From NCBI GenBank assembly GCA_001600695.1, contig BCKQ01000002.1, positions 1,199,184-1,263,183 of the forward strand: a stretch of 64,000 nt of DNA, written 5' to 3'. Made by a program: the position numbers and the translations under genes. The notes below the pieces were generated by a model. That model ran no database searches and had not been told where the DNA came from. It was given only the letters and a program-made list of their open reading frames with translations. The stretch comes from Ascoidea asiatica JCM 7603. Its lineage: Eukaryota > Fungi > Ascomycota. Below, in pieces: positions 46,522-63,170 of the stretch; position 1 is the first letter of the stretch; every line of letters starts with the position of its first letter.

Positions 46522-48216
46522 ATGAATAAATATAAACCTCGTAATAATAATATTAAAAGTAAAATAGGAATTTACGAAGAAGAAGATCAATCTTCAAATT
46601 TATCAAATTCAAAAATTCAATCAAAAAATTATAATAATGTTTCAAATATATTAAGAGAAGCAGCTTCATATTGGGAAAATGGTGCAAAATCAATAGAAGA
46701 ATTAATTTATCAAAATAATTCTTTTCAAAATGAAATTCAAGATCTTAATGAGAGATTAGATAATTTAAATGAAAAAAATAACTCTTTGAATGAAAAAAAT
46801 AATTTTTTAAATGAGGAAAATTTATTATTAAAAAAAAAATTAAATGAATTACAAAATTTTAAAAATAAATTTAATGAATTGAATTTTAAAAATGACTCAA
46901 ATTTAAAACAAATTGAATCTTTAAAAAAACAAAACAATGAATTTTGTAAAAATTTCAATATATCTGAATCAAATTATCAAAAATTAAGATTACAATTATT
47001 TAATTTATCTAAAGAACATAATGATATCAATAAAAAAATTTACCATCTTGATGAAAAAGATTCAAATTCAATGAATAATAATGAGAAGAAAATTTTAATT
47101 AATAACAATTGGCTATTCATAAAAGATATTGATATAAAGCATCATACTCCAAATAATAGTTTATCCAATTTATCTTCAATATTATCAAATTCCTCTAACT
47201 CCAATACAATTTCTAACAATGCCGCCAACTCTCCTCTTCAATCCAAAATTAATCTAAACAACTCTAGTAATAATATTGATAGAATAGATAATATTGATAA
47301 GAAAAACTTCAAGTTTAATGAAAGCACCAATTTCAATGATGAAATTGATATTGATAATGATATGAGTAATGCTAATAATGACAATATCAGTGACAAGAAT
47401 AATAATATCAATCAAAGATTTAAAAATTCTATAGATATTAATAATGAAGATTTGAATTTTGATGAAAATGAATTTAATCAAAATCCGATTTCACAAAAAA
47501 AAATACTTAATAATCTAATATCTCTGCCAAATTCAACTTATACAAAATTAGATTCTCCAAAAATTGCAAAAAATATATTATTATCTTCCAATGAAAAATT
47601 TCCAACTTCAACTCCATTTAATAAATTATCTATAAACAAAGATAAACTAGTCATTAACAATAATAATAATACTAATAAAAATTTGTCAAATAATTTATCT
47701 AAAAATTCAAGAAATAATTCTTTTAGGTCTCCTTTAAATGAAAATCGTACATATTCTTCAACCTCAAATTTAACTTCTTCAACAGTAGCCGCTACAAATA
47801 ATTCTATTTTTTCAAATCATCTAGATTCAATTAATTCTTCTAATTCATTTTCTAGTCTTCATTCAAATTTACATTCTCCAATATCAAATCCAATGACTCC
47901 ATCAAATTCAAATAATAAATTTATCACTGCAAATAATTTAGTTTCTGTTAAAATTGTACCAAATAGTAAATTAAAATTCAAAAATATTACAAATACTTTA
48001 TTAACTAACTTTGTTAGTAGTTTCAATAAAAATGATACTTTATATGATGTAATTCGATTATATGAATCAAATGTTTCTGACATCAGTTATAAATTTGAAT
48101 ATTATTTTAATGATCATCCAATAGAAAATTTAGATATTACACTTTCTGAATTAGATCAATATAATAAAAATAAAGGTTTTATAACCTTAGTTATTAGAGA
48201 TATTAGAGATTATTAA
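46522..48216 (+). CDS. Coiled-coil protein with disordered middle and putative C-terminal ubiquitin/SUMO-like domain
   Basis: Heptad region at about aa 55-180; last 90 aa VSVKIV...NDTLYDVIRLYE...FEYYFNDHPIENLDITLSELD...ITLVI follows the beta-grasp pattern; no diglycine. Confidence 0.75.
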   Translation: MNKYKPRNNNIKSKIGIYEEEDQSSNLSNSKIQSKNYNNVSNILREAASYWENGAKSIEELIYQNNSFQNEIQDLNERLDNLNEKNNSLNEKNNFLNEENLLLKKKLNELQNFKNKFNELNFKNDSNLKQIESLKKQNNEFCKNFNISESNYQKLRLQLFNLSKEHNDINKKIYHLDEKDSNSMNNNEKKILINNNWLFIKDIDIKHHTPNNSLSNLSSILSNSSNSNTISNNAANSPLQSKINLNNSSNNIDRIDNIDKKNFKFNESTNFNDEIDIDNDMSNANNDNISDKNNNINQRFKNSIDINNEDLNFDENEFNQNPISQKKILNNLISLPNSTYTKLDSPKIAKNILLSSNEKFPTSTPFNKLSINKDKLVINNNNNTNKNLSNNLSKNSRNNSFRSPLNENRTYSSTSNLTSSTVAATNNSIFSNHLDSINSSNSFSSLHSNLHSPISNPMTPSNSNNKFITANNLVSVKIVPNSKLKFKNITNTLLTNFVSSFNKNDTLYDVIRLYESNVSDISYKFEYYFNDHPIENLDITLSELDQYNKNKGFITLVIRDIRDY

Positions 48217-48848
48217 TTATATATTGGAATGTTAATTTTCACTTCACTTTCCTTCTTTTTCTTTTTCTTTTTCTTTTTTTTTCAAAAAAACTCTTTTTTC
48301 CGTTATTCTTTGGTTTGGTTTAATATTTATTGTGTTTCCTTTTTTATTCTCTCTTTTAACCATATGTGTTTTCAAATTCATTTCATTCTACAAATCTTAA
48401 TTAAGTCATTATTTTTAATTATCATTATTCTTTTTGCTAGTTATATCATTTTCATTATTGCTTCATATATTTTTTTTATTTATTTTTCTATTTATTTCAA
48501 TATCATTATTAAATTTTGGTTATATTATCTTTTTAACTAAATAATGGATATGAATTAATCCTGATTTTCAATAATCAAAATCTATTTTTAATTCATTCAC
48601 TTTTTCTTTTTGAAATTTCATAATCTTTGTGATATATACAGTACTAATCCACTTTTATTTACGTCTTAATTCTTTCATATTCAATAATGTAGTTAAATTC
48701 AACTCGGAGTTTAGTTATTAGTTATCTATAAAAAAAAAAGCATTCAAAAAGCATTTTAAAAAAAATTTAAAAAAATTTATAAAAAAAAATAAAAACAAAA
48801 TTTTAAAGAGACATTCAAAAGACATTTCACAAGGAATTAAAAAAAAAA

Positions 48849-50297
48849 TTATAATTGAAGTTCTTCAGTTTCACAAGTTTTAAGAGTAAGATGATTACTT
48901 ACCCAATTACTATCTCTAAGTAAAGCTCTTGGATCATTTGAACCAAATACATTACAATATTGTTTTGCTTTTTCATGAACAATATTATAATTATCTTCTA
49001 ATTCTTTAAATTCTCTTAAAATTAAATTTTCAGAAAATTCAATAAAAACTCTTGTATCTTTAATTTTAAATATCACATTATCAACTCTTAAAAAAAATCT
49101 TGATAATAATAATAATCTATCTTTCATAACTCTAATTTTAAGTTGAAGTACAGAAATTCCATTATCGGCTAATTCATCTTCATATAAAATCATTTCATCA
49201 AAAAATAATATTGGATCTTTTTTTTTTAATAATGAAAATGGAATTTTTTTATCAGACTTTTTGAAATGAAGATTATTTGAAATACTTTCATTATTTTCTT
49301 CAGTAAGTTCTTTGTTTTTTTTATTTTCAGTATCTTTAGTATCTTTAGTATCTTTAGTATCTTTAGTATCTTTAGTATCTTTAGTATTTTCATTATTATT
49401 TTCAATTGAGTCTTTGATAATTTTCAAAGTACCTTTATAATTAGTTGAATAAGTCCAATCATATGGTTTTAAAACTTTATTTATACCATTATCATTATTA
49501 TTATTATTATTATTATTAGTTGCAAAATTTGAACTTTTTAATTTTTTTTTTGAAGACCAATGATCAGCGTGACAAACTTTTAATAAACTTGATTCATCAC
49601 AACCATATTTTAAAACTAAATCAAGAGCATCAATAGTATTAAAATTTAATTCAAATTTTTTAAAATTATTTATAATTTTTATAAAATTATTACCAAAAAT
49701 CATTTCAGGTAATGGAATATTTAATATTTTCTCAAAATGATTAATTTCAATAGCATTTAAAATTGGTTTTCTAGTTGTGAAAATTTCCCAATTATTTATT
49801 GAAATTGATGGAGAATCATTAAAAGGATATGAAGATGATGGAGCTGGTATTATTACACTACCACAACATGAACATTTTGGATTTTTACAAAGTTTATGAT
49901 CAGAAATTGCAGGTATCATAATATCTGGATTAAATTTTGATTCGTTGATTGAATTACTATTCGAATCATTATTTAATTCATTATTTGATTCAATATTTGA
50001 TTCATTAGTTATTTGGTTATTATTAGTTATTGAAATTGGTGGAGTAGATGTAATCGGAGTGGGATTGATTGAATTTAAATTACCAATTTTATTAATTGAA
50101 GAATTAATATAATTTGGATTTCTTGATCTTGTTGAAATTAAGAATAAATCTTTTGCATTATTAATTTGAATTGCATTTATACCATTTTTTGGTAAATAAA
50201 AATTTGACTTAGAATTTGAATTTAAATTTCTATTTCTATTTTGAGTAACTTTTGAAGGTTTATTATTAATGGAAGATGTTTTATCATTCAAAGACAT
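48849..50297 (-). CDS. TIP41: PP2A/Tap42-interacting protein Tip41
   Basis: HKLCKNPKCSCCG, IPLPEMIFGNN, KPYDWTYSTNYKGT, DPILFFDEMILYEDELADNGIS, KIRVM, RFFLRVDNV; (KDT)n repeat insert. Confidence 0.97.
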   Translation of the reverse strand: MSLNDKTSSINNKPSKVTQNRNRNLNSNSKSNFYLPKNGINAIQINNAKDLFLISTRSRNPNYINSSINKIGNLNSINPTPITSTPPISITNNNQITNESNIESNNELNNDSNSNSINESKFNPDIMIPAISDHKLCKNPKCSCCGSVIIPAPSSSYPFNDSPSISINNWEIFTTRKPILNAIEINHFEKILNIPLPEMIFGNNFIKIINNFKKFELNFNTIDALDLVLKYGCDESSLLKVCHADHWSSKKKLKSSNFATNNNNNNNNDNGINKVLKPYDWTYSTNYKGTLKIIKDSIENNNENTKDTKDTKDTKDTKDTKDTENKKNKELTEENNESISNNLHFKKSDKKIPFSLLKKKDPILFFDEMILYEDELADNGISVLQLKIRVMKDRLLLLSRFFLRVDNVIFKIKDTRVFIEFSENLILREFKELEDNYNIVHEKAKQYCNVFGSNDPRALLRDSNWVSNHLTLKTCETEELQL

Positions 50298-50943
50298 TTT
50301 TATAACTTGATAACTTGATATATTGATATATTGATATATTGATATATTGATTATTTTAGATTCTTGTTAACTGGCAATTGATTATTGATTATTGATTGAT
50401 GATTGATGATTGATGATTAATTGATTATTTATTATTGATTATTTATAAATGATTGAATATGATAAAATAAACGAAATAAAATACAATTCACATAGTTAAC
50501 AAGATTAGTTACTTAGTTAATTAGTTAGTTAGTGATATTAACCGTTAGCGGTGCGTATTAAATAACGCTAGGTGAAGAAGAAAGGTTTTACATTGCTCAG
50601 TTTCAGGGTACAGTAAAAATAGTAAAATAGAATCAAACTTACAATTACAATTACAATTTACAATTTACAATTTACAATTTACAAGTTAAAAGAAAGAAAG
50701 AAGGATTTAAGATTTAATATAATTTTTATTGTTACATAGTACAAAATAGATAATTGTAAAATATTTTAAGATATATTATATAATAATATACCGATTAGAT
50801 AATAGATATAATTGATAATAGATAATAGATAATAGATAATTGATAATTAATAGTTGTAAGTTGAAAATTGGATAATTTGATAATTGATAAAGATAGGAGG
50901 GAAAGGGATAGAGACAAGAAAGACATTAATAAGATAAATAATA

Positions 50944-51273
50944 TTAGTAACCACCACCATTTTGAAAACGAACAACTTCAATAACATCACCATCAATCAT
51001 TTCAAATTTCTGTGGATTATCATTTGGAGCAACTCTTGTACCATCGAACATAAATCTAACAGAATTTGAATCTAATTCATTTTTTGAACAATAATTATCA
51101 AATAATTTTTTAAATTTAGTATGCATTTTAATTTGATAAATTAATTCTAAAGAATTATCTTGCATTCTTAATTTAATTTTAATTTTTTCACTTGATCTTC
51201 TTGCTGAACTTCTATCAGATTGATTAACTTCTGGAGATTGTTCACGACTTGGAGCTGTTGAAGTTGTATTCAT
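50944..51273 (-). CDS. Divergent SUMO (Smt3-like) modifier with C-terminal QNGG-GY
   Basis: IKLRMQD..ELIYQIKMHTKFKKLFDNYC..SVRFMFDGTRV..NDNPQKFEMIDGDVIEV.RFQNGG aligns with the SUMO core but is far more divergent than normal yeast Smt3. Confidence 0.88.
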   Translation of the reverse strand: MNTTSTAPSREQSPEVNQSDRSSARRSSEKIKIKLRMQDNSLELIYQIKMHTKFKKLFDNYCSKNELDSNSVRFMFDGTRVAPNDNPQKFEMIDGDVIEVVRFQNGGGY

Positions 51274-51828
51274 TTTTAATGTAATGTAATTTAATTTAAT
51301 TTAATTTTAAATTTTTAGTTATTTTATATTTTATTATAGATTGAAATTAAAAACCAATAAGGAATATTAATTAGGAATATTGATAATGAATATTAATAAT
51401 GAAAATATAAAGATCAAAAATTAAATATTAAAGGATTGATATAAAAGATTAAAGGATAGAAATAGAATGAAACAATTGTAAAACAGAAATAAAAGAAGAA
51501 ATGAATATATGAATATATGAATAATTGAGTAAATTGGTAAATAACTTATTTAATAATTATATTATTGAATATAATAAAAATCGATAATAAATAAATAAAT
51601 AAATAAACAAATAAACAAGTAAATAAAAGAGATAGAAAAGAAAGAAGAAAAGAAATAAAAGCAGAGGAAATAATCAAATAAAATAAACAAAACGCGTTGA
51701 AGAAAGTAAACAATGAAAAGAGGAAACAAAAGAGAGAAGAAAGAGAGCAGAGCAGAAGAGAGCAGAGCAGAAGAGACGACGGAAAAGAGACGACGGAAAA
51801 GAGACAAAGCAGCGAAAGAGACGCCAGG

Positions 51829-51862
51829 CAGCCACCACACTCGCCACTGAGAATGGTGGCTG
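51829..51862. promoter_or_regulatory. Inverted repeat CAGCCACCA...TGGTGGCTG (two opposed Crz1/CDRE-like cores, or a hairpin)
   Basis: Perfect 9-bp arms at 51829-51837 and 51854-51862 with additional inner CTC/GAG pairing. Confidence 0.5.
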
Positions 51863-52212
51863 ATCAGAGTGCGTGATCAAAGGGTGTCGTGTTAAAGTGA
51901 GTGTCAAAGTGCGTTTTACTAGTCGGATTGAGTTGTTTTCGAGGTTGCCCAATTTGGATCTGCCCTTTTTGTGACCATTTCACTCTAATCTACCAATATT
52001 TTCACTTGAGTTGCAAAAGCAGCAGTTTTTGATGCTTGTGAATTGCAATTGCAACTGGAGAGAAGAATGAAATAAAGCAGTAAAGAATATATTAATGGTC
52101 TATAAAAGTGTAAAAAATGACAAAAACAGAAACGTAAGAAACAAAACAAAGATCTAAGAAAATAATGCACAAAATATACAGAAATTAAAGAAGTAAATAA
52201 GATAATCAGGCC

Positions 52213-52260
52213 TATGATTATGATTATGATTATGATTATGATTATGATTATGATTATGAT
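52213..52260. repeat. (TATGAT)n microsatellite overlapping the stop codon of the 52254 gene
   Basis: About 8 hexamer copies. Confidence 0.9.
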
Positions 52261-53414
52261 TTGAAATAAGCATAAAGAATTTCACCATGTTGAACATTAT
52301 ATCCTTTATCAGGATCAATAATTTGTCCTTTATAATTTTTAAAATTTAATAATGATAAATTACTATCATTTTTTAAACTATATTTTATAAATATTTTTCT
52401 TAATAATTTTGTATTTCTTTGACTTTTATCAAATTCTTTCATTGGAATTTTAAAATAACATGGTTTTAAAACTTGTTGTTTACCACGAATTTGAATTTGA
52501 ATTAATTCATTCTTAGGTCTTGAATTTTTTAAAATTGATTTTCTTCTTATAATTTTTATACCTCCTCCATCATTACCATTAATATTATCTAATTCATTAT
52601 TATTATGATTATGATTATGATTACCATGATTATGATTAATATTATGATGATATTCAAATTCTTTTTTAACAAATTTATCTCTTTCATTTTCAATAACATT
52701 CTCAATATAATCTTCTTTAAATTTATTTTCATTTATTTCTAATCCTACTTCTAATTCATTATTTAATTCTTTTAAATTTTTATAATTTTTATTATATGGA
52801 AATTTATTTTCATTTTTATTAAAATCTTTAAAATTAAAATAACTTTTATTTACTTTTTTATTATCAATTTGATTATAATTATAAATTTGTTTTTTTAATA
52901 ATTCATTCTCAATTAAAATTTTTTCAAAATTTAAATTATTCTCATTTAATTTTTTTCTTAATTCTTCTTTTTCTTTATTAATTATTTCTAATTTTATTTC
53001 ACATTCATTCATATCCATATTTTCATTTTCATTTTCATTTATATTTATATTTTCATTTCCATGATAATTAAAATCTTTTTCTTTTAATTGAATTCTTAAA
53101 TTTGTAATTTCAGTAATTTTATTAAAATTATCATTCTTTAGTTCTTCATATTTAAATTTCATAATTTCTTTTTCTTTTATTAATTTTTGAATTTTAATTT
53201 TTAATGATTTTGAATTATCATCTCCTGAATTTAAATTTCTTTCATGATTTTTTTCATAATTTTCAATTTTAATTTTTAATTCTTTAATTTGATAATTTAA
53301 TAAATCTTTTTCATTTTTTTCAATTTGATTATAATTTTTTAATTGTTTTATAATTTCATCAAATTTTAATTCATCTAAATCTTTTATATCTTCATAACTT
53401 TTATCATAATTCAT
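52254..53414 (-). CDS. Coiled-coil protein with degenerate C-terminal SUMO-like domain (probable ATG at 53414)
   Basis: Long heptad region; C-terminal LIQIQIRG..CYFKI...TKLLRKIFIKYSLKN..LNFKNYKGQIIDP...HGEILYAY follows the SUMO beta-grasp pattern; no diglycine. Confidence 0.75.
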   Translation of the reverse strand: MNYDKSYEDIKDLDELKFDEIIKQLKNYNQIEKNEKDLLNYQIKELKIKIENYEKNHERNLNSGDDNSKSLKIKIQKLIKEKEIMKFKYEELKNDNFNKITEITNLRIQLKEKDFNYHGNENININENENENMDMNECEIKLEIINKEKEELRKKLNENNLNFEKILIENELLKKQIYNYNQIDNKKVNKSYFNFKDFNKNENKFPYNKNYKNLKELNNELEVGLEINENKFKEDYIENVIENERDKFVKKEFEYHHNINHNHGNHNHNHNNNELDNINGNDGGGIKIIRRKSILKNSRPKNELIQIQIRGKQQVLKPCYFKIPMKEFDKSQRNTKLLRKIFIKYSLKNDSNLSLLNFKNYKGQIIDPDKGYNVQHGEILYAYFKS

Positions 53415-54534
53415 TTTTAAAAAAATATCATAGATAATAATATTTATAATTATAAAGTATATAAATAAGTACACAAATAACTTGAAATGGAAAATAAATA
53501 AATTGAATGAAAGTAAAATAACTGAAGGTGATTTAATTCCTTATAAGTTATATCAGTTCAAATATCTTGAATCTTTTATACTCAATATTAAATACTTAAA
53601 TGACTTAAATTGATTTAAATCAATTTGAATTGAGATGACCTGAAATGAATTAATTGAATTGAAATTGAATTGAGGTAAAGTTAAGTTAAGTTAAATGACA
53701 TCAAACCAATTTCAAGGATCATATATTATTATTATATAAATATATGATTATGATTAAAAAGGAATGAAAGGTAAATCATATTGAAACTTGTTGATTGAAT
53801 TGATTATATCCAGCAATAAATTTATCCAAATTCGATTATTATCATTAATTATTTCTGCAATCCCATTATTTATTATTATAATTATTTACAATTAATAGGC
53901 CTTATTGACTTTAATTACGAGAAATAGAATATATTAAAATGAAATTCGAAACTGAATCCAATTATATTTCATAAAATTCTAAAGTTAATTGTTACTGTTT
54001 CTCATTATTTCTCATTCATTATTATCTTTTTATCATAGTTTTATAATAGTTTTAATATATTACATTTTTTGTTGTGTTGATTTAGACGAGAAAGAAAAAA
54101 ATAGAAATTAGACGATATAAAAAAAATAAAGCCAAAATCACGGGTCTCATTAAAAATACATTTTTGCAGTTTAAAGTATAATATACATATTAGTACATAG
54201 TAATACTTAGTACCGTATTTGTGGTTTTTTTGTGATTAAATTTATTGAATTTTAATAAAAAAGATCATAAATTTAAATTAAAATCTAAATTGAAATATTG
54301 AAGATAATGTGATTGGGAGTGTGATTGTAATTATAATTATAATTGTACTTGTGATTGAAATAAAAAAATGCTAGGAGAAGGAGGAGGAAGACAAGAAGAA
54401 AATAAAAGAAAAAAAGAAGTAGAAATTGAAGACATTACAAAAGTAATTAAACAAAAAAAAAGTATAAGAAAACGAAAAACGAAAATGAAAAATAACAAAG
54501 TAATAATAAAAATAAAAAAAAAGATTAAAGTAAA

Positions 54535-55059
54535 TTAAAATGAATTTATAGTTAAAGAACTTGCAACTTCAGTATGTTCAACAGCTTTTTTAAATTCTTC
54601 AAAATCAAGTTTACCATCACCATCAGTATCATTTTCCATAATTGTTTTATCAACAATTTGTTGTAATTGTTGATCTTCTAAATTTTTACCAACCATTGCT
54701 TTTAAAACAATAAATAATTCACCATTTGATATATAATTATCTCTATCAATATCATAAACTTTAAAAGCAAATTTTAATTTATCATCTTTTGAAGTTTTAT
54801 TTGAAAAAATTGATAAAGCATTAATAAATTCTTGAAAATCAATTTCATCACTACCATCTTCATCAAAAACTTCCATTAATCTTGAAGCTAAAGGATTTGA
54901 TTGAACTCCAGGTATTGCTAAAAATTCATCTTTTTCAATTAATCCACTACCATTTGTATCTAATTTCATAAATCTTTTTCTTAAACGATCCATATCATCA
55001 TGATCGAAACTTGTACCTTCTATAAGATCATCAATAAGTTTTGAAGATGTTGCACCCAT
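54535..55059 (-). CDS. CNB1: Calcineurin regulatory subunit B
   Basis: MGATSS myristoylation start, [10 protein letters not shown], four EF-hands, [38 protein letters not shown]. Confidence 0.98.
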
Positions 55060-55932
55060 TTTTATATTTTATTATGTTCTATATTTATTAAAGCTTTAAA
55101 AATTTAAAGATCTGAATTGTATTTAGTTATTTAGTTATTATTCAATTGTTTTTATATAAACATTTACTTTCCCGTTGTTAATATAATTAATATTATACTA
55201 TTTGATATTTTGTATGTTATATTAAAGGTTAATTGAATTCAATTTTTAATTACGTAAAGTGAATATGAATATAAATATATATATAAAAATTCTTATTCCA
55301 ATTGTTATTCCTATTCTTCTTATACTTTTTATTGTATTTTTGTTTCTATTTTTGTTTCTATTTCTATTTCTATTTCTATTTCTTTTTCTAACTTCAGATT
55401 CTATTGCCATAATTAAGTATTTTCATTTTGTTCAGCTGACATTCATCTTTTGTGGGAGTGGAAAAGTTCTTAATTTCTTCAGTTCTTAACTTCGGTTGCA
55501 ATGAACAGCGTTGGTAATTAAAACTAATCGGTCATGTGATATAACTTGCCACAATTAAATCTAATTTAGAAAATAGTGGCGAGTGCTAAATTTTAGAATC
55601 AAAAAATGTATTTAAGCTAACGTACAAGATAATAATAAATATGAAATAAAAATTATTAAATAAATATAAAACTTTTTATTAATTGATTTATTTTAAACAA
55701 ATACACATGCCATTATTAAAAGTAAAAGTAAAAGTAAAAGTAAAAGTAAGAATAAAACTAAAATTAAAGATACGAATAGAATAAAATAAAATAAAATAAA
55801 GTAAATATAAAGTAGGATAGAAAAAGAACATTTGAAATTTGAATTAAATTTTGAAATTATAAAAAACATTAAGATAATGAATATGATAATAAACATGATT
55901 AAGATAATAAATAAAATATGAAAAAAGATTAA

Positions 55933-56913
55933 TCATGAAGAATTAAAAAAAGGATGAAGTAAAGCTTCTTTTGCAGTTAATCTTTCTTGATGATCATATC
56001 TTAATAAATGATCAATTAAATCAATCGCCACTGGAGTTGCAAATTTTTTATTTGAATCATTAATAAAACTTTCCCATGATTTTGAATTACAATCAGTTAT
56101 AATATCAAAATATTCTTGACCTAATTCAATACCATATTTTTCAAGATATTTAAATAATTTATTTGTACCTAAAACTTTTGTAATTTTAACTAATTGATCA
56201 GGATTTGAATTACCTCTAAAAAAAGGTTCAATTTTAAAAATTATTGCAGCTAACATTGCACCAACAGACCATAAATCTAATGAATAATCATATTGTTGTA
56301 AATTAATTAATAATTCAGGACCTTTATGATATCTTGAAGCAACTCTAACATTATAATCAGTACCAGGATGATAAAATTCTGCAAGACCCCAATCAATTAA
56401 TCTTAAATTTTTTTTAATTGGATCAATCATAATATTTTGTGGTTTAACATCTCTATGTATGATACCCATAGAATGAGAATAATTTAAAGCAATTAATAAT
56501 TGAGTAAAATAATATTGTATATCAATTAATTTAAATTTTGGATATAAAATTCTAAAATCAATGTTATTAATATGTTCAAAAATTAAAGCAGGAATTTTAC
56601 TATTTGAATCATGAACAATATCTAATAATGAAATTATATTTGGACCACCAGTTAAATTTTGTAAAATTTTAACTTCTCTAAAAATTTTTTTTAATTTAAC
56701 TGGTTTTAAAACTTTTATTGCACATGGTTGTTGATTTAAAATATTTATACCATTAAAAACTTCAGAATATTTACCACGACCAATTTTACTTATAATTTCA
56801 TAATTTGAAATATTACTCCAAAATAGTCTATGATTTTCATAATCCCAATAATCTTTTGGCCTTCTTTCATTTGCATCTGCATAAATTTTTGCAACTGAAT
56901 AAACTCTTGACAT
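55933..56913 (-). CDS. CKA2: Casein kinase II catalytic subunit alpha'
   Basis: [62 protein letters not shown] (PQN and RYHK are Cka2-type). Confidence 0.95.
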
Positions 56914-57802
56914 TTTAATAGTTATTAGTTATTATTATTGATAAAATAAGATAATTTAAACGCGACTAGACTAAAAAAAAAAGAATATAAAATAAAACTA
57001 AAGGAATATAAACCAATATATAAATGAAAAGAAATAAATACTATCTATAAAACTTTATGCTATTCGAATCAATTAAATTCAACTCAACTCAGCTCAATTA
57101 AATTTAATTCAATCTAGTTAAGTCAATTCAATTAGGAGACAGTGAATGATATTGTGATTAGATTATGAATTTAGATAGATAATAGTAGATAAGTTACTTA
57201 CAGAATAGCAGATATATTATTGATAGAATAATACAGTTATCGCAATAGACTTTACCCAGTGCAGAATCAGAATCTGTTTTGAAGCAGAGTGATAATAGCA
57301 CGGTTGTAGCCGGTAGTGGTAGTATTAGTGTTAGTATTAGTGTTAGTGTTAGTGTTAGTGTTTGACACTCGTCTCCTATTTTTATTATTATTATCACTAT
57401 GGAGTTGGCTAAAAGTGGAACAGAACCGAAAGTGAACTGGGAGTGGAACTGGAACTTGAACTGGCTGGAGCAGAGACAGGGGAAAAGACAGGGGAAATAG
57501 AAATAGTGCAGAAGAGACCCCCAGTACTGGTGTCGGATGGAATTCAGCCACATCATGTGACAGAACAAGGAACAAGAAAATTGAAAAAGAAGACCCGTTG
57601 TATTGGATTCACAACACCACTCAGGGCTCTAACGTCAGGGTTCTTATATTCTATTTACTATTTACTATTTATTATTTATTGTTTATCATCGACGAAAACA
57701 TTCAAATTCACCAGACTCAATTTCAAATTCAATTTCACATTCATCAGAAGCAGTGGCAAATCCATCTTTTGAAAATCAAAAAAAAAAATTACCGCCCAGA
57801 AA

Positions 57803-58331
57803 TCACCATTCTTCAGTTGGATTCTTCTTAAATTCTTCATATTCCTCTAAATTGAAATAAGACAATTCAGTCTCATTCTCAATATCATAATCAATTAATT
57901 TTTTATTTAAATCATTTAAAATCCATTTATCATCTTTATCAAAATTTATTACAAGATTCATACTTTTAGAATAATGAGCTTTTGTATAAATTTTAATTGT
58001 ATTAAATTTTGAAATATTATTCTTAACTGTTCGAAATGTTTTATTATTTAAAATTTCTTTATTAATAATTTCTTCTAATTCAATCACTGTGATTTCATTT
58101 AAATTAATATTATGTAATATTAAATTCTTAATATTTCTATATGGAAATGATTTAATTATTCTTATAGTTAATGTTGCCTGTGTCACTTTATATATAAATA
58201 TTGTTAGTATTGTCTCCCTTATATTTTATATTCCATTCATATTTTATATAAAATAACTTACATGGACGAACCGTTGATGTCAATGGCTCTTCAATATCAA
58301 AATCATTAATTACAAACTTATCACTACTCAT
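57803..58331 (-). CDS. AIM29: UPF0538/C2orf76-family protein (Aim29); exons 58331-58262 and 58185-57803
   Basis: EEPLTSTVRP|LTQATLTIRIIKSFPYRNIKN, KIYTKAHYSKSMNLVINF, ENETELSYFN..YEEFKKNP; GTAAGT donor, TACTAAC branch, AAG acceptor. Confidence 0.92.
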
Positions 58332-58976
58332 CTTCACTATTATTTATTTATTATTATTATCCTCTATTATTTTCTAGTATTATATCTATTATATTCTTAT
58401 TACTGATTATATTCGCCTTCAATCAATCAATCATTCTATAAATTATTTCAATTAAATTAAATTAAATCAAATTAATTTTAAAAGAACCACAAAATTGGTC
58501 TGAAACCGAAATTGCATGCAGATGCATTTATATACATAATTACACATGCTATTCCAAACTCTATTTATCCTTATTGATGATTTAAAATTTATGATTTATT
58601 ACAATTCTATTTATTTATCAAAACCACAAAATATTGACCCTCTTCATTTGAATGCTATAATTAATCACTTTCTAATCATTCATCAAAGTTTTTTCAACTT
58701 TTAATGATATTTCTTTTATTTCTATTTTTTTTGAAACATTTTTAATCAAATTTGAAATAAGTTAAAATTATTGAAAATAATTAAAAAATGATTTGAATTG
58801 AGATTAAATACAAATTAAATAAATACTTATTATTCTCTTCAATTCTTTTTCTTTGTCCTTTTTAAATTCTTTTTTTTCGCTTCTTTTACTAAATAATGTT
58901 TTATTATTCAATAATTATCTCCTAAATTTCATATTAATCCTATATCAATAATAATAAGAATAATATTATTTTAATA

Positions 58977-59431
58977 ATGTCAATAAATTCAAATGATATT
59001 TCAATTAAAAAAATTAATTTATCTTCAATTTTAAATTCTTCTTGGATTAATACTCAACAAAAAGTATTTATTCGTTGGATTAATAATCAATTTTTATCAA
59101 CAAATGATACTTTAATTAAATCTCAATTTATTAATAATAATTCAAATTCTTTTTTAATTAAAGATTTATCAAAAGATTTATCAAATGGTACTAAATTAAT
59201 TTACCTTTTAAGAATTTTATATTCAAATAAATTTAATGATTATTTAATTCCAATTTATAAAATTCCAAAATTTAGAATTCAATATATTGAAAATTTAAAT
59301 TTTTTTTTAGATTTTTTAAAATTTAATGAAAATTTAATTTTTTATAATATTGGGGCTGAAGATATACTTGATGGTAATTTAAAATTAATTTTAGGTTTAA
59401 TTTGGACTTTATTCTTAAATTTCACATTCAA

Positions 59432-59475
<44 letters not shown>

Positions 59476-61112
59476 TTAATAATATAGTTAAAAATGATAC
59501 TTCAATTCAATTTAATCAAAAAAAACAAATATTATTAAATTGGTGTCAAAATATAATTTTAAATAATAAAAATTATAATAATATAAAAGTTTTAAATAAT
59601 TTTTCAAATCATTGGAATAATGGTTTACCATTTTGTGCAATTTTAAATCATTTTAAACCAAATTTAATAAATTATTCAATTTTAAATCCAATTGAAATTA
59701 ATAAAAATATAAATTTAGCTTTAAATATTTCAAAAAATTCTTTAAATTTACCAAATTTAATTGATTTAGAAGATATTAATATTAAAAATCCTGATGAAAA
59801 ATCTTTAATTCTTTTTATTTCAACTTGGTATAATTATTTTAATTCAAATAATTACAAAAATAACTCACAAATTGAAATTAAAAATAAATCTCAAATTGAT
59901 ATTCAATCTGATAGTGAATATTCTGATTATAATAATAGTTTTGAAAGTGATAATGATGATGATAAAAAAAGTATTAAAAGTTTGAGAAGCATACAAAGTA
60001 ATGAAACAACTTTTTACGAAGAAACTGAAATTGAAAATGAAATGAAACCTAACTTAACTATTGAAGAACCAAATATTATTTATTTGAATAATTTCTTAAA
60101 AACTTCATCAGAATTATTTAATAATATCAAAATCTTTAAATTTATTTCAAAAAGATTAATTTCAAATTTAAATACTCAAATTTTAAAATGGAATAATACC
60201 ATTTTAAGTTTTAATAATTATAAAGAGAATGTTAATTATTCAATTGAAGAAATTTTAAATAATTTTGAAGAAATTAAATTTATTAAAGATTCCAATTATA
60301 ACAAATTTTATAAATTGAATTTAAAACCAAAATTTCTTAAACAAAAACAAGAAATTGAAATTTATTATAATAAATTATTTAATATTAATAATGATAATAA
60401 TAATAAGTTTATAAATTTTCCAAAATTAATCAATTTTAAAAAATCATTAAATATAATTATTAAAAATATTAATATCAAATGGAATGAATTTAATTTAAAT
60501 GAAATTAATTATGAAAATAAATTATATCTAAAAGAAAAAAATTTAAAAAAAATTTTAGATTTTGTATTTTTAAAAGATTTAAAACAAATGAATGAAAAAT
60601 TCAATAATATTATTAATGATATAAATTTTTTCAATTTGAATAAATTTGAAAATAATAGGTTAAAAATTTTAGAAGATTTAAAAAATTTTCAAATTGAATT
60701 AAAAGATAAAATGATTATTAATAATCCATATACAGAAATTCATAGATCAATTTTAACTTATGATTGTTTATTTGAATATAGTTTAATTATGAAAGATTAT
60801 GTTGAGAAAAATTTTATTGAAAATTCAAATAATAATGAATTTTCTTTTGAGTTAACTGAAAAAAATTTCAAATTAATTCAATTAAATAGTAATGATGGTA
60901 TTGTTAATATTGATAAGAGTGGTCAAAATGATGACAATATCGGTTTGAATGAATGTAAAGATACAATAGAGATGAAAAAATTATCAACAATAATCGATAA
61001 AGAAACAATAGATAAGTTGATTACTATAACAGGAAATGACCAAATTTTTAATTTTGTCAAATATTTAGATGATTTATTTGAAATTTCCAATGAAATCTCT
61101 GAGGAAATTTAA
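58977..61112 (+). CDS. Alpha-actinin-like protein (tandem CH domains, helical rod, degenerate EF-like end)
   Basis: WINTQQKVFIRWIN, DLSNGTKLIYLL, IENLN..LDFL, NIGAEDILDGNLKLILGLIWTL, LLNWCQ, NFSNHWNNGLPFCAIL, PDEKSLI. Confidence 0.9.
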
Positions 61113-61344
61113 GTTTTTTATTTCTTTTCAATTTTTTCAAGTTTTTACAATTTTTATTCTTTTTTTCAAACAGTTGTACTTTAATTTTTTTTTTATAGGG
61201 AAGGGAATACTTTCATTTCAACTAGGTACTTTCATAATGGATGTTTAGGATAATTTTACTTTATTTACTTAAATTGAGATCTTCTTTTTGAATCTTGAGT
61301 CGTAGAAATGTCTTACATCAGTTTGATCAATTCACCATCTTCTT

Positions 61345-61354
61345 ATTTGTGACC
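61345..61354 (-). promoter_or_regulatory. MSE/Ndt80-like element (GGTCACAAAT) upstream of the 61632 gene
   Basis: Matches GNCRCAAAW; the same TTTGTGACC occurs at about 51968 upstream of the free SUMO-like gene. Confidence 0.4.
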
Positions 61355-61631
61355 GAGACCAGAACTGCGGGCCGGCTGGGCCTAATCTTGGGGAAAGATT
61401 AAAAATAAAGCGTAAAGCTAAATGAAAAGCATCAACAGAGCACGGGAAGAAGAAACACGAAATATTTCATGACAATTGAAATTATTCAGGATATAATCAG
61501 TGTTTATTATTATTATTATTATTATGATAATATTCAGACAGAAATCTTGAAAGAAGAAAGAATAATACAAAGGATATATCTTAATTGAGTGGAATAGACT
61601 AATTGAATAATCAAGAGTCATATATATTACA

Positions 61632-63170
61632 ATGGAAAAAGAACTAGATCAATGGATTGACTTCACCCTTGAGTCAAGTAATAAGTTCATGAAAGAACTT
61701 TTAAAAGAACAAGCAATAATTTTAACAGCAGAATTACAAGAAAAATTAGAAAATATTCAAAGGAAAGATGAGGATTTAGAACAACAAGTAAAATATTTAG
61801 GTGAAGAAATTGATAATATGGGAGTTGAATTAAATAAAAAAGATAATGAAATAAATTTTTTAAAAGAAAATAATTTTGAAAATAATGAAAAAGATAAAAT
61901 AATTATTGAAAAAAATGAAATAATTGAAAAAAATGATAAAGAAATTTATGAATTGAATTGTAAACTTAATTCACTTAAAAGAAAGATATTTTCAATATTT
62001 TCTGAAACTACTGGTGATATATTGACTTCTAATGATAATGATGAATATATACAAAAATCTTCTCCAAATTTAAATTCAAATACTGAAATTCAGCAAAATA
62101 TAGAAAATGAAGAAAGTATAGAAAATGAAAAGAGGAATCAAGAATTAGAAAATGAAGAAAATGAAGAAAATGAAGTAAATCAAGAACATCAAGAATCTCC
62201 GAAGACTCCTACGGCTCCAGATACTTCTGAAGATCAAATAAATCAAAAAATTCTAGAAAATAAAGAGAGCCAAGAAAATCAAGAACCCTTAGAAATCCAA
62301 AAGGATCAAGAAGATCAAGAAATGACTGATGTAAATAATGAAGAATTTAATAATAATAATAATTCTAAATCAAATTCAAAAAAAACTTTATTTCCCTCAA
62401 AATCTTTAGAAGAAACTGTTTTAAATTTAGTTAAAACTTTTGAACCAAAAAGAAAATCAGTAAGTTTGAAAATAAATGATAATGAAAATGAAAATGAAAA
62501 TATAAATGAAAACTCAAAAGAAAATAATACTTTAATAGTAAGTGATATTATTGATAATACATTAAATTCTTCATTTAAAAGAAAATTCTCGGATACCGAA
62601 GAAAATAATGAAAAAATTGATAATAATATTGATAATGAGAATGGAAATACTACTATTAATGAAAATGACAATGGTAATGATGGCGAAAATGAAACTATTA
62701 ATCAAACTATTTTAGAAAGTAATAATGATTCAAATGAACAAGATTATGATAATGACAATAATAATAATAACGATGACAATCAAGATGATAGTATAGATGA
62801 TAATAATAAAAATAAAATGAGAAAAATATCTAAAACAACTGTTAAAAAAGAGAAAAAAGATAAAAAAATTAAATTAGTTAAAGAAAAAATAGGTACAATT
62901 GATGTTAGAGTTTCTGATGGTACAAAACAACTTTTATTTAGAGTTAAAGCAAATACAAAATTTAAAAAATTATTTGGTCATTATTGTAATAGATCAAATA
63001 AAGATATTAATGAAATTTTATTTTATTTCAATGATAATATTATTAATGAACAAGATACTCCTGCAGAAACAAAAATGATTGTTGGTAAAAATTATATCAT
63101 TACTTGTGTTCCAAATATTAAAAAATTGAATGATGAAATTATAGATGAAAATGCTGAAACTAAAACTTAG
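61632..63170 (+). CDS. Coiled-coil + acidic disordered linker + single C-terminal SUMO-like domain
   Basis: IDVRVSDGTKQLLFRVKANTKFKKLFGHYCNR..ILFYFNDNIINEQDTPAETKM (about 62895-63115) aligns with Smt3 INLKVSDGSSEIFFKIK...DQTPEDLDM; no diglycine. Confidence 0.85.
   Translation: MEKELDQWIDFTLESSNKFMKELLKEQAIILTAELQEKLENIQRKDEDLEQQVKYLGEEIDNMGVELNKKDNEINFLKENNFENNEKDKIIIEKNEIIEKNDKEIYELNCKLNSLKRKIFSIFSETTGDILTSNDNDEYIQKSSPNLNSNTEIQQNIENEESIENEKRNQELENEENEENEVNQEHQESPKTPTAPDTSEDQINQKILENKESQENQEPLEIQKDQEDQEMTDVNNEEFNNNNNSKSNSKKTLFPSKSLEETVLNLVKTFEPKRKSVSLKINDNENENENINENSKENNTLIVSDIIDNTLNSSFKRKFSDTEENNEKIDNNIDNENGNTTINENDNGNDGENETINQTILESNNDSNEQDYDNDNNNNNDDNQDDSIDDNNKNKMRKISKTTVKKEKKDKKIKLVKEKIGTIDVRVSDGTKQLLFRVKANTKFKKLFGHYCNRSNKDINEILFYFNDNIINEQDTPAETKMIVGKNYIITCVPNIKKLNDEIIDENAETKT

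Follow-up and report, generated by a model that had tools for sequence, protein, structure and literature searches.

Does a yeast genome carry, next to its canonical SUMO (small ubiquitin-like modifier) gene, a second set of SUMO-type genes that has been kept together over long evolutionary distances? The question is raised by a stretch of 64,000 nucleotides from Ascoidea asiatica JCM 7603 (assembly GCA_001600695.1, contig BCKQ01000002.1, here C2:1199184-1263183; hereafter the window), which belongs to a 20.3-Mb genome of 71 contigs with a G+C content of around 22%. An earlier note had described one free SUMO-like gene and three proteins with a coiled-coil N-terminus and a SUMO- or ubiquitin-like C-terminal domain in this window. 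All four open reading frames (ORFs), named here after their lowest coordinate, are present, and the motifs quoted for them were borne out: TKFKKLFxxYC in both 50944 and 61632, TKLLRKIFIKYS in 52254 and YFND in both 61632 and 46522.

50944-51273, minus strand: SUMOb, second free SUMO paralogue, 109 amino acids (aa), Pfam Rad60-SLD 63.7 bits
52254-53414, minus strand: rod protein of 386 aa with a putative divergent C-terminal SUMO-like domain, encoded on the strand of SUMOb and directly upstream of it
61632-63170, plus strand: rod protein of 512 aa with a single SUMO-like domain (SLD), Pfam Rad60-SLD
46522-48216, plus strand: orphan protein of 564 aa, member of the syntenic block; membership of the SUMO family not supported

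We read these genes as a conserved second-SUMO neighbourhood in which SUMOb would be conjugated and the rod proteins would serve as scaffolds that mimic SUMO, and give this statement as a whole a probability of roughly 0.6. Its anatomy, the family assignments and the conservation are highly probable; the mechanistic part (conjugation of SUMOb and SUMO-mimicking scaffolds) is tentative. Judged by sequence, the neighbourhood adds SUMOb, a 52254-type rod protein and a 61632-type rod protein to the SMT3/ESC2 set of the genome.

A second free SUMO gene

The product of SUMOb matches the Pfam Rad60-SLD profile (PF11976; cut-off 23.8 bits) with an E-value of 1.4e-17, and the ubiquitin profile with 21.5 bits, which is under the cut-off of that profile. 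The SUMO core spans aa 31-101 and the C-terminus reads QNGGG-Y, with the GGG at aa 106-108 (bases 50950-50958). PF11976 was run against all six frames of the whole genome and the ORFs were then read, which recovered a canonical SMT3 on contig C3 (C3:1370489-1370812; ...THINLKVSDGSSEIYFKIK...REQIGG) and an ESC2-like gene. SUMOb is 38-40% identical to this SMT3, and is neither the only nor the closest copy of SMT3 in the genome, the C3 gene being far more canonical. The proposal that 50944 is a second SUMO and not the sole one was thus upheld; the same whole-genome search excluded that 61632 is ESC2 and that 50944 is the only SUMO, two of the findings that had been named beforehand as speaking against a second system.

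Orthologues of SUMOb were found at 79-86% identity (79% for P0001; the other in Ascoidea rubescens DSM 1968, the name given to assembly GCA_001661345.1 in 10.1101/2022.06.08.495308) and at 58% identity (P0002), and a further one, of 108 aa, is encoded in Logan contig L031. All five orthologues keep the GGG, followed by Phe or Tyr and a tail of 0-6 variable residues. Given the conservation of this signature, SUMOb is expected to be a precursor that is trimmed at its glycines by a Ulp protease. With respect to A. rubescens, the SUMOb core shows 0.079 non-synonymous substitutions per site (dN), which is lower than the values for CK2alpha (0.126) and TIP41 (0.21); as synonymous sites are saturated, the ratio to synonymous substitutions (dN/dS) was not computable for SUMOb and 52254 and the comparison is one of dN only. 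Considering the low dN, SUMOb is under strong purifying selection and not fast-evolving, and it is this selection by itself that suggests that the gene is expressed. The flexible N-terminal 29 residues lack lysine in both the window gene and the A. rubescens gene. Since Smt3 chains form through lysines of the N-terminal tail (K11, K15 and K19), SUMOb would not form chains in the way that Smt3 does.

The genome holds yet another free gene of this type:

C1:719205-719552: SUMOc, third free SUMO-type gene, 115 aa, Pfam Rad60-SLD 42.7 bits

It encodes a TKFKKIF helix and ends in ...QKDGGG followed by a tail of nine residues. No SLD-rod gene was found in its flanks on C1, which are gene-poor.

Rod proteins with fixed SUMO-like tails

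The 61632 protein begins with a helical or coiled region (around aa 1-125), which a long, acidic linker of low complexity connects to one SLD (around aa 420-492, bases 62889-63107). Within the latter, aa 430-482 match Rad60-SLD with 36.7 bits when the whole protein is used and with 41 bits for the tail alone. The fifth strand, NYIITCV, is followed by around 20 residues (...ITCVPNIKK...) without a GG, in line with the proposed single SUMO-like domain that lacks a di-glycine. The SLD is 36.5% identical to SUMOb and 40% to SUMOc. It does not make 61632 the orthologue of ESC2, as a separate ESC2-like gene with two SLDs is located on C4 (486 aa; SLD2 56 bits, SLD1 region recognisable). In a tree of 13 SUMO-type domains, SMT3, SUMOb, SUMOc and the 61632-type SLDs form a clade apart from Esc2 SLD2 and ubiquitin (support 90/91).

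Word-index searches for homologues with the 46522 tail and the 61632 SLD region gave no matches, and the orthologues were recovered only via synteny. The syntenic orthologue of 61632 in A. rubescens (601 aa) is scarcely alignable except in its tail, where the SLD (24.3 bits) has the same TKFKKLF helix and the protein ends in ...AFPK. The same architecture of helical N-terminus, acidic linker and C-terminal SLD was encountered near the calcineurin B gene CNB1 in L030 (421 aa, 33.2 bits) and in L029 (298 aa; E-value 2e-8 with a local hidden Markov model, HMM). A complex prediction for the 61632 SLD and UBC9 (exon 2 only) gave no answer (score 0.00), which is no evidence either way.

In the ORF list the 52254 gene starts at a GTG (53474); its orthologues start near ATG 53414, which is therefore probably the true start. 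The protein has a conserved N-terminal motif, a helical or coiled region, a low-complexity linker and then a C-terminal domain of 85 aa (bases 52257-52511). This domain stops right after the fifth strand, the protein ending 1-3 residues later without a GG (...YAYFKS here and ...YVNYK in the orthologues). An orthologue in L019, adjoining P0002, is 35% identical over the last 82 aa (E 1e-15) and conserved in the N-terminal region as well. When 1.84 billion representatives were searched exhaustively with HMMER, a two-sequence profile of the tail yielded five more 52254-type proteins (297-431 aa), and in each of them the domain is the last part of the chain.

A seven-sequence profile of the 52254-type tail was then aligned with the SUMO profile using hhalign, which gave a probability of 92.5% (E 4.9e-7) in a register that runs from helix 1 to strand 5. 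The score of 40.9 compares with 10.8 +/- 2.2 for column shuffles (maximum 19.8; none of 300 reached it) and 10.5 for the reversed profile. Four of the five weak PDB matches of the profile are SUMOs (SUMO1, SUMO2, fly SUMO and another SUMO-like chain). In the local ORF set, the HMM of the tail matches SUMOb of four species (E 2e-4 to 4e-3) and, reciprocally, the SUMO HMM matches three 52254-type tails (E 0.03-0.06). The family also has an invariant motif of its own, F-x-N-Y-K-G ... G-D-I-I-Y-V. On the strength of these alignments the tail is best taken as a very divergent SUMO-like domain without a GG, as had been suggested. Language-model feature searches with the 46522 and 52254 tails stayed at noise level (0.82-0.86). 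Having no di-glycine, the SLDs of 61632 and 52254 are not releasable or conjugatable.

The N-terminal regions were assessed for coiled coils by a crude test of heptad periodicity against shuffled sequences (95% level). Periodicity above 95% of the shuffles was obtained for 46522 (aa 55-92) and its A. rubescens orthologue (aa 57-169), for the 52254-type orthologues P0011 and P0012 (around aa 110-200) and for the 61632-type proteins of A. rubescens (aa 8-48) and L030 (aa 81-119). The 52254 and 61632 proteins of the window itself did not exceed this level. The coiled-coil N-termini described earlier were thus recovered in 46522 and, for each of the three families, in some of the orthologues, and not in the window's own 52254 and 61632. 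Weak Pfam and PDB matches of the rod regions were all to coiled-coil segments, and their rod nature is plausible and modestly supported.

Conservation and age of the neighbourhood

Between the four ORFs lie genes for Cbf5, TIP41, calcineurin B, CK2alpha, a DUF2340 protein and a CH-domain protein, identified from the ORF list and Pfam. Those used in the comparison are:

48849-50297, minus strand: TIP41, interleaved housekeeping gene outside the SUMO set, Pfam TIP41 200 bits
54535-55059, minus strand: calcineurin B (CNB1), ORF and Pfam, synteny anchor
55933-56913, minus strand: CK2 alpha, ORF and Pfam, synteny anchor
57803-58186, minus strand: DUF2340 protein, ORF and Pfam, synteny anchor
58977-61112, plus strand: alpha-actinin-like protein with two CH domains, ORF and Pfam, synteny anchor

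According to whole-genome profile searches, the genome contains seven SUMO-type genes (SMT3, SUMOb, SUMOc, 61632, a 1087-aa protein on C2, ESC2 and 52254), and three of these seven fall within 12.2 kb of the 20.3 Mb. The rough probability of such proximity is around 4e-5, and the arrangement is conserved in other species, so the clustering that had been pointed out goes beyond chance. In A. rubescens, the CK2alpha of which is 83% identical to that of the window, a 21-kb stretch contains all four genes in the same order, inverted. The co-oriented pair formed by a 52254-type gene and SUMOb is also found in L019 and L031, which represent more distant yeasts, L031 holding the most divergent member of the 52254 family. 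The two genes are thus adjacent in the window genome, A. rubescens, L019 and L031. In L026, L029 and L030 the 52254-type gene lies alongside the CNB1, DUF2340 and CH genes, and the interleaved neighbours (CNB1, CK2 alpha, DUF2340 and CH) recur in L025, L026, L029 and L030. Such a distribution indicates that the cluster is ancient and not a recent expansion. The earlier description of a local, fast-evolving expansion was not supported, in view of this synteny, complete in A. rubescens and partial in distant yeasts, of the dN of SUMOb relative to that of CK2alpha and of the lack of similarity among the three N-terminal rods.

The DUF2340 and CH-domain genes are kept as block neighbours in several yeasts (L025, L026 and L029). 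In A. rubescens TIP41 is found at the corresponding place, and the public gene model there fuses it with SUMOb into one 634-aa product with Rad60-SLD and TIP41 domains (KV454483.1; L025 11608-14256). The two ORFs are separate in that genome too, with a stop codon after GGGF. The spacer between SUMOb and TIP41 in the window contains a GTAAGT (around 50641) and a CACTAAC-like branch site (around 50530); these signals may mark an intron in the 5' untranslated region of TIP41 and not a fusion.

Possible roles and alternatives

Elsewhere the genome encodes five intact C48 proteases (PF02902), of which one is Ulp1-like and the other four are Ulp2-like; the catalytic His, Asp, Gln and Cys positions are present in each. 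Saccharomyces cerevisiae has one Ulp1 and one Ulp2. Only one of the 15 matches to E2 enzymes is UBC9; GTAAGT and TACTAAC signals mark an intron near the 5' end of its gene.

C11:238778: Ulp1-like C48 protease, PF02902
C13:337104: Ulp2-like C48 protease, PF02902
C14:308945: Ulp2-like C48 protease, PF02902
C23:84018 and C23:88287: tandem Ulp2-like C48 proteases, PF02902

In the mechanism that we propose, SUMOb would be processed at its GGG and attached to targets via the single Aos1/Uba2-Ubc9 route. Given the absence of lysine from the N-terminal tail, it could be a mono-modifier or a chain terminator, and it may be a substrate of at least one of the four Ulp2-like proteases. Through their helical regions the rod proteins would probably dimerise, thereby displaying two fixed SUMO-like domains. 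By analogy with the SLDs of Esc2, Rad60 and NIP45, the roles of which are established, they may act as constitutive SUMO mimics on which partners with a SUMO-interacting motif (SIM) or Ubc9 could dock. A more far-reaching version, which we consider improbable, holds that Ascoidea-type yeasts and their relatives possess a SUMO pathway that runs in parallel and is partly dedicated. Its components would be conjugatable SUMOb and SUMOc, discriminating Ulp2-like proteases and dimeric rods that mimic a pair of SUMOs and recruit or titrate SIM proteins, SUMO-targeted ubiquitin ligases (STUbLs) or Ubc9 at a specific structure. If true, it would parallel, in fungi, the division of labour between SUMO1 and SUMO2/3, with a new class of linked single-SLD scaffolds.

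Comparison with known systems leaves the individual parts familiar. SUMOb resembles Smt3, which is the one essential SUMO of budding yeasts, and the SUMO paralogues that vertebrates, plants and some insects have, in its PF11976 signature, its identity to the SMT3 of the same genome and its Gly-Gly with a short removable tail, and it resembles SUMO1, as opposed to SUMO2/3, in lacking an N-terminal chain-forming lysine. It differs from Smt3 in being a second paralogue (with SUMOc as a third) in a fungus, in ending in GGG plus an aromatic residue instead of QIGG plus ATY, and in its genetic linkage to SLD-bearing proteins. Like the RENi proteins (Esc2, Rad60 and NIP45), the 61632- and 52254-type proteins have integral, non-cleavable SLDs at the C-terminus of a larger protein, an arrangement that would let them dock to Ubc9 or SIM proteins with no conjugation involved. 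RENi proteins, however, have a disordered, SIM-bearing N-terminus followed by two SLDs in tandem, whereas here a single SLD follows a helical, heptad-bearing region, and the 61632-type SLD groups with the true SUMOs and not with Esc2 SLD2. A fixed modifier-like domain by which a larger adaptor docks is also known from Dsk2, Rad23 and UBX proteins; in these it is of the ubiquitin type, mostly N-terminal, and docks to the proteasome or Cdc48, whereas here it is of the SUMO type and C-terminal, on rod-like proteins. With respect to the SUMO-chain protease Ulp2/Smt4, this genome has four genes (two in tandem on C23) where S. cerevisiae has one, and a link between this increase and SUMOb is conceivable.

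Several observations weigh against our reading of the neighbourhood. RNA runs for this organism were sought and none were found. The tree resolves nothing inside the SUMO clade, and for that reason the donor SUMO of the SLDs cannot be named. The 52254 tail stays below the Pfam thresholds, without any Pfam match, and its single-sequence AlphaFold2 model is unusable (predicted local distance difference test, pLDDT, 44.6). The evidence for coiled coils is modest, and the N-terminal rods of 46522, 52254 and 61632 share no similarity in BLAST comparisons, so that the three rod proteins are not shown to be paralogues of each other. Finally, the alignment indicates that an acidic loop residue, which we take to be a contact to the Ubc9 backside in SUMO, is not retained in every 61632-type SLD.

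In one alternative the rods would be structural or organelle-specific proteins, for instance of the spindle pole body, the septum or the nuclear envelope, with a tail that is a generic interaction module of SUMO ancestry, no longer tied to the SUMO pathway, and a linkage left over from the ancestral tandem duplication that gave rise to the domains. A 52254-type SLD that has moved past recognition by Pfam and acquired its own invariant motif (NYKG...GDIIYV), a 61632-type SLD that evolves fast (dN 0.64) and rods that are unrelated in sequence all fit this explanation. It accounts less well for the pair of 52254-type gene and SUMOb, which lie side by side in one orientation in at least four species, and for the expansion of Ulp2-like proteases and further SUMO-type genes in the genome, which points to a change at the level of the pathway. 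We regard it as somewhat unlikely.

A different alternative concerns 46522, which we have left out of the SUMO set. The protein has a conserved N-terminus that includes the heptad segment, an Asn/Ser-rich linker and a C-terminal domain of around 98 aa (bases 47920-48213). Its A. rubescens orthologue (679 aa) is 52% identical in the N-terminal region (E 6e-39) and 48% in the tail; in view of this conservation the tail is a real, constrained domain (dN 0.44). Word-index and local HMM searches found no homologues outside A. rubescens. The earlier assignment of a beta-grasp fold to this tail was not supported: hhalign against SUMO gave a probability of 0.3% when a single sequence was used and of 0.7% with two (E 0.079), with 20 of 300 shuffles scoring equally well, and the tail showed no similarity to the 52254-type tail and no sequence match in the PDB. 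A low-confidence model (pLDDT 63) returned nothing significant in Foldseek pdb, VIA wide or Atlas shape searches, its fold matches being at noise level. All three rod tails could still be beta-grasp domains, with that of 46522 merely diverged past sequence detection. The weak Foldseek matches of its model are mostly LC3, UBL, UBX, PB1 and SUMO entries (E 0.13-1.5), the Atlas feature and shape matches include ubiquitin-like families at noise level, hhalign places its F-x-Y-x-F-N-x-x-P-I in register with strand 3 of SUMO at the E-value just given, and the gene is co-conserved in the block. We regard a shared fold as rather unlikely, and 46522 is best described as a co-conserved neighbour in a syntenic block.

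It is also unlikely that SUMOb is a non-covalent binder that is never conjugated or a little-used relic, with SLD neighbours that are functionally unrelated to it. Relics of this kind exist, such as human SUMO4 and SUMO5 and the non-expressed SUM genes of Arabidopsis, and the absence of RNA runs, the residues ahead of the GGG, which differ from the canonical ...REQIGG, and the single UBC9 that would have to be shared are all compatible with one. Against this alternative stand the retention of GGG, aromatic residue and variable tail in five orthologues, a dN below that of CK2alpha and the conserved place next to the 52254-type gene in distant species. The least probable alternative, a SUMO module specific to sporulation or meiosis and controlled by Ndt80 via middle-sporulation elements, was suggested by GNCRCAAAW sites (GTCACAAA(A/T)) upstream of 50944 (51967-51975) and 61632 (61345-61353), and was rejected because the counts equal chance (four matches in the window against 4.5 expected, and none beyond chance upstream of SUMOb in L019 and L031) and the sites are not conserved, the A. 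rubescens promoters having no such element and the sole match there lying inside the CK2 coding sequence.

For SUMO biology budding yeast serves as the reference, and a yeast that has two or three SUMOs ending in GG lets the specialisation of paralogues be studied as a natural experiment in a small, intron-poor genome. The single-SLD rods widen the repertoire of SUMO mimics beyond the two-SLD proteins Esc2, Rad60 and NIP45, and the conserved pair of 52254-type gene and SUMOb provides a concrete and testable hypothesis of a functional partnership. Reviews ascribe a single SUMO to fungi (PMC11986368), and full-text searches of the literature on SUMO in Ascoidea and Saccharomycopsis, on SUMO duplications in fungi and on fungal proteins that combine an SLD with a coiled coil turned up no account of this system. 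The parts are of known kinds, namely a SUMO paralogue and integral SLDs; what appears to be undescribed is that a budding yeast has a second and a third SUMO, that two families of rods bear a single SLD, and that these are linked in a conserved way.

The remaining genes with a related domain are scattered over the genome:

C2:1596162 onward (L015 3178-5001), plus strand: protein of 1087 aa with an N-terminal SLD (Pfam 30 bits) ahead of a long rod
C3:402896-403024 (L014 2397-4001), minus strand: Asn-rich protein of 725 aa with a ubiquitin-like domain at the C-terminus
C3:1081869-1082036 (L016 540-788), minus strand: divergent ubiquitin-like protein of 83 aa ending in ...SGGRKVK, Pfam ubiquitin 55.6 bits
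C37:1885: fragment of a C48 protease, PF02902

The gene for the 1087-aa SLD-rod protein is divergently oriented with respect to an SNF2-family gene (L015 2-2452, minus strand) that resembles Uls1/Ris1, a SUMO-targeted ligase.

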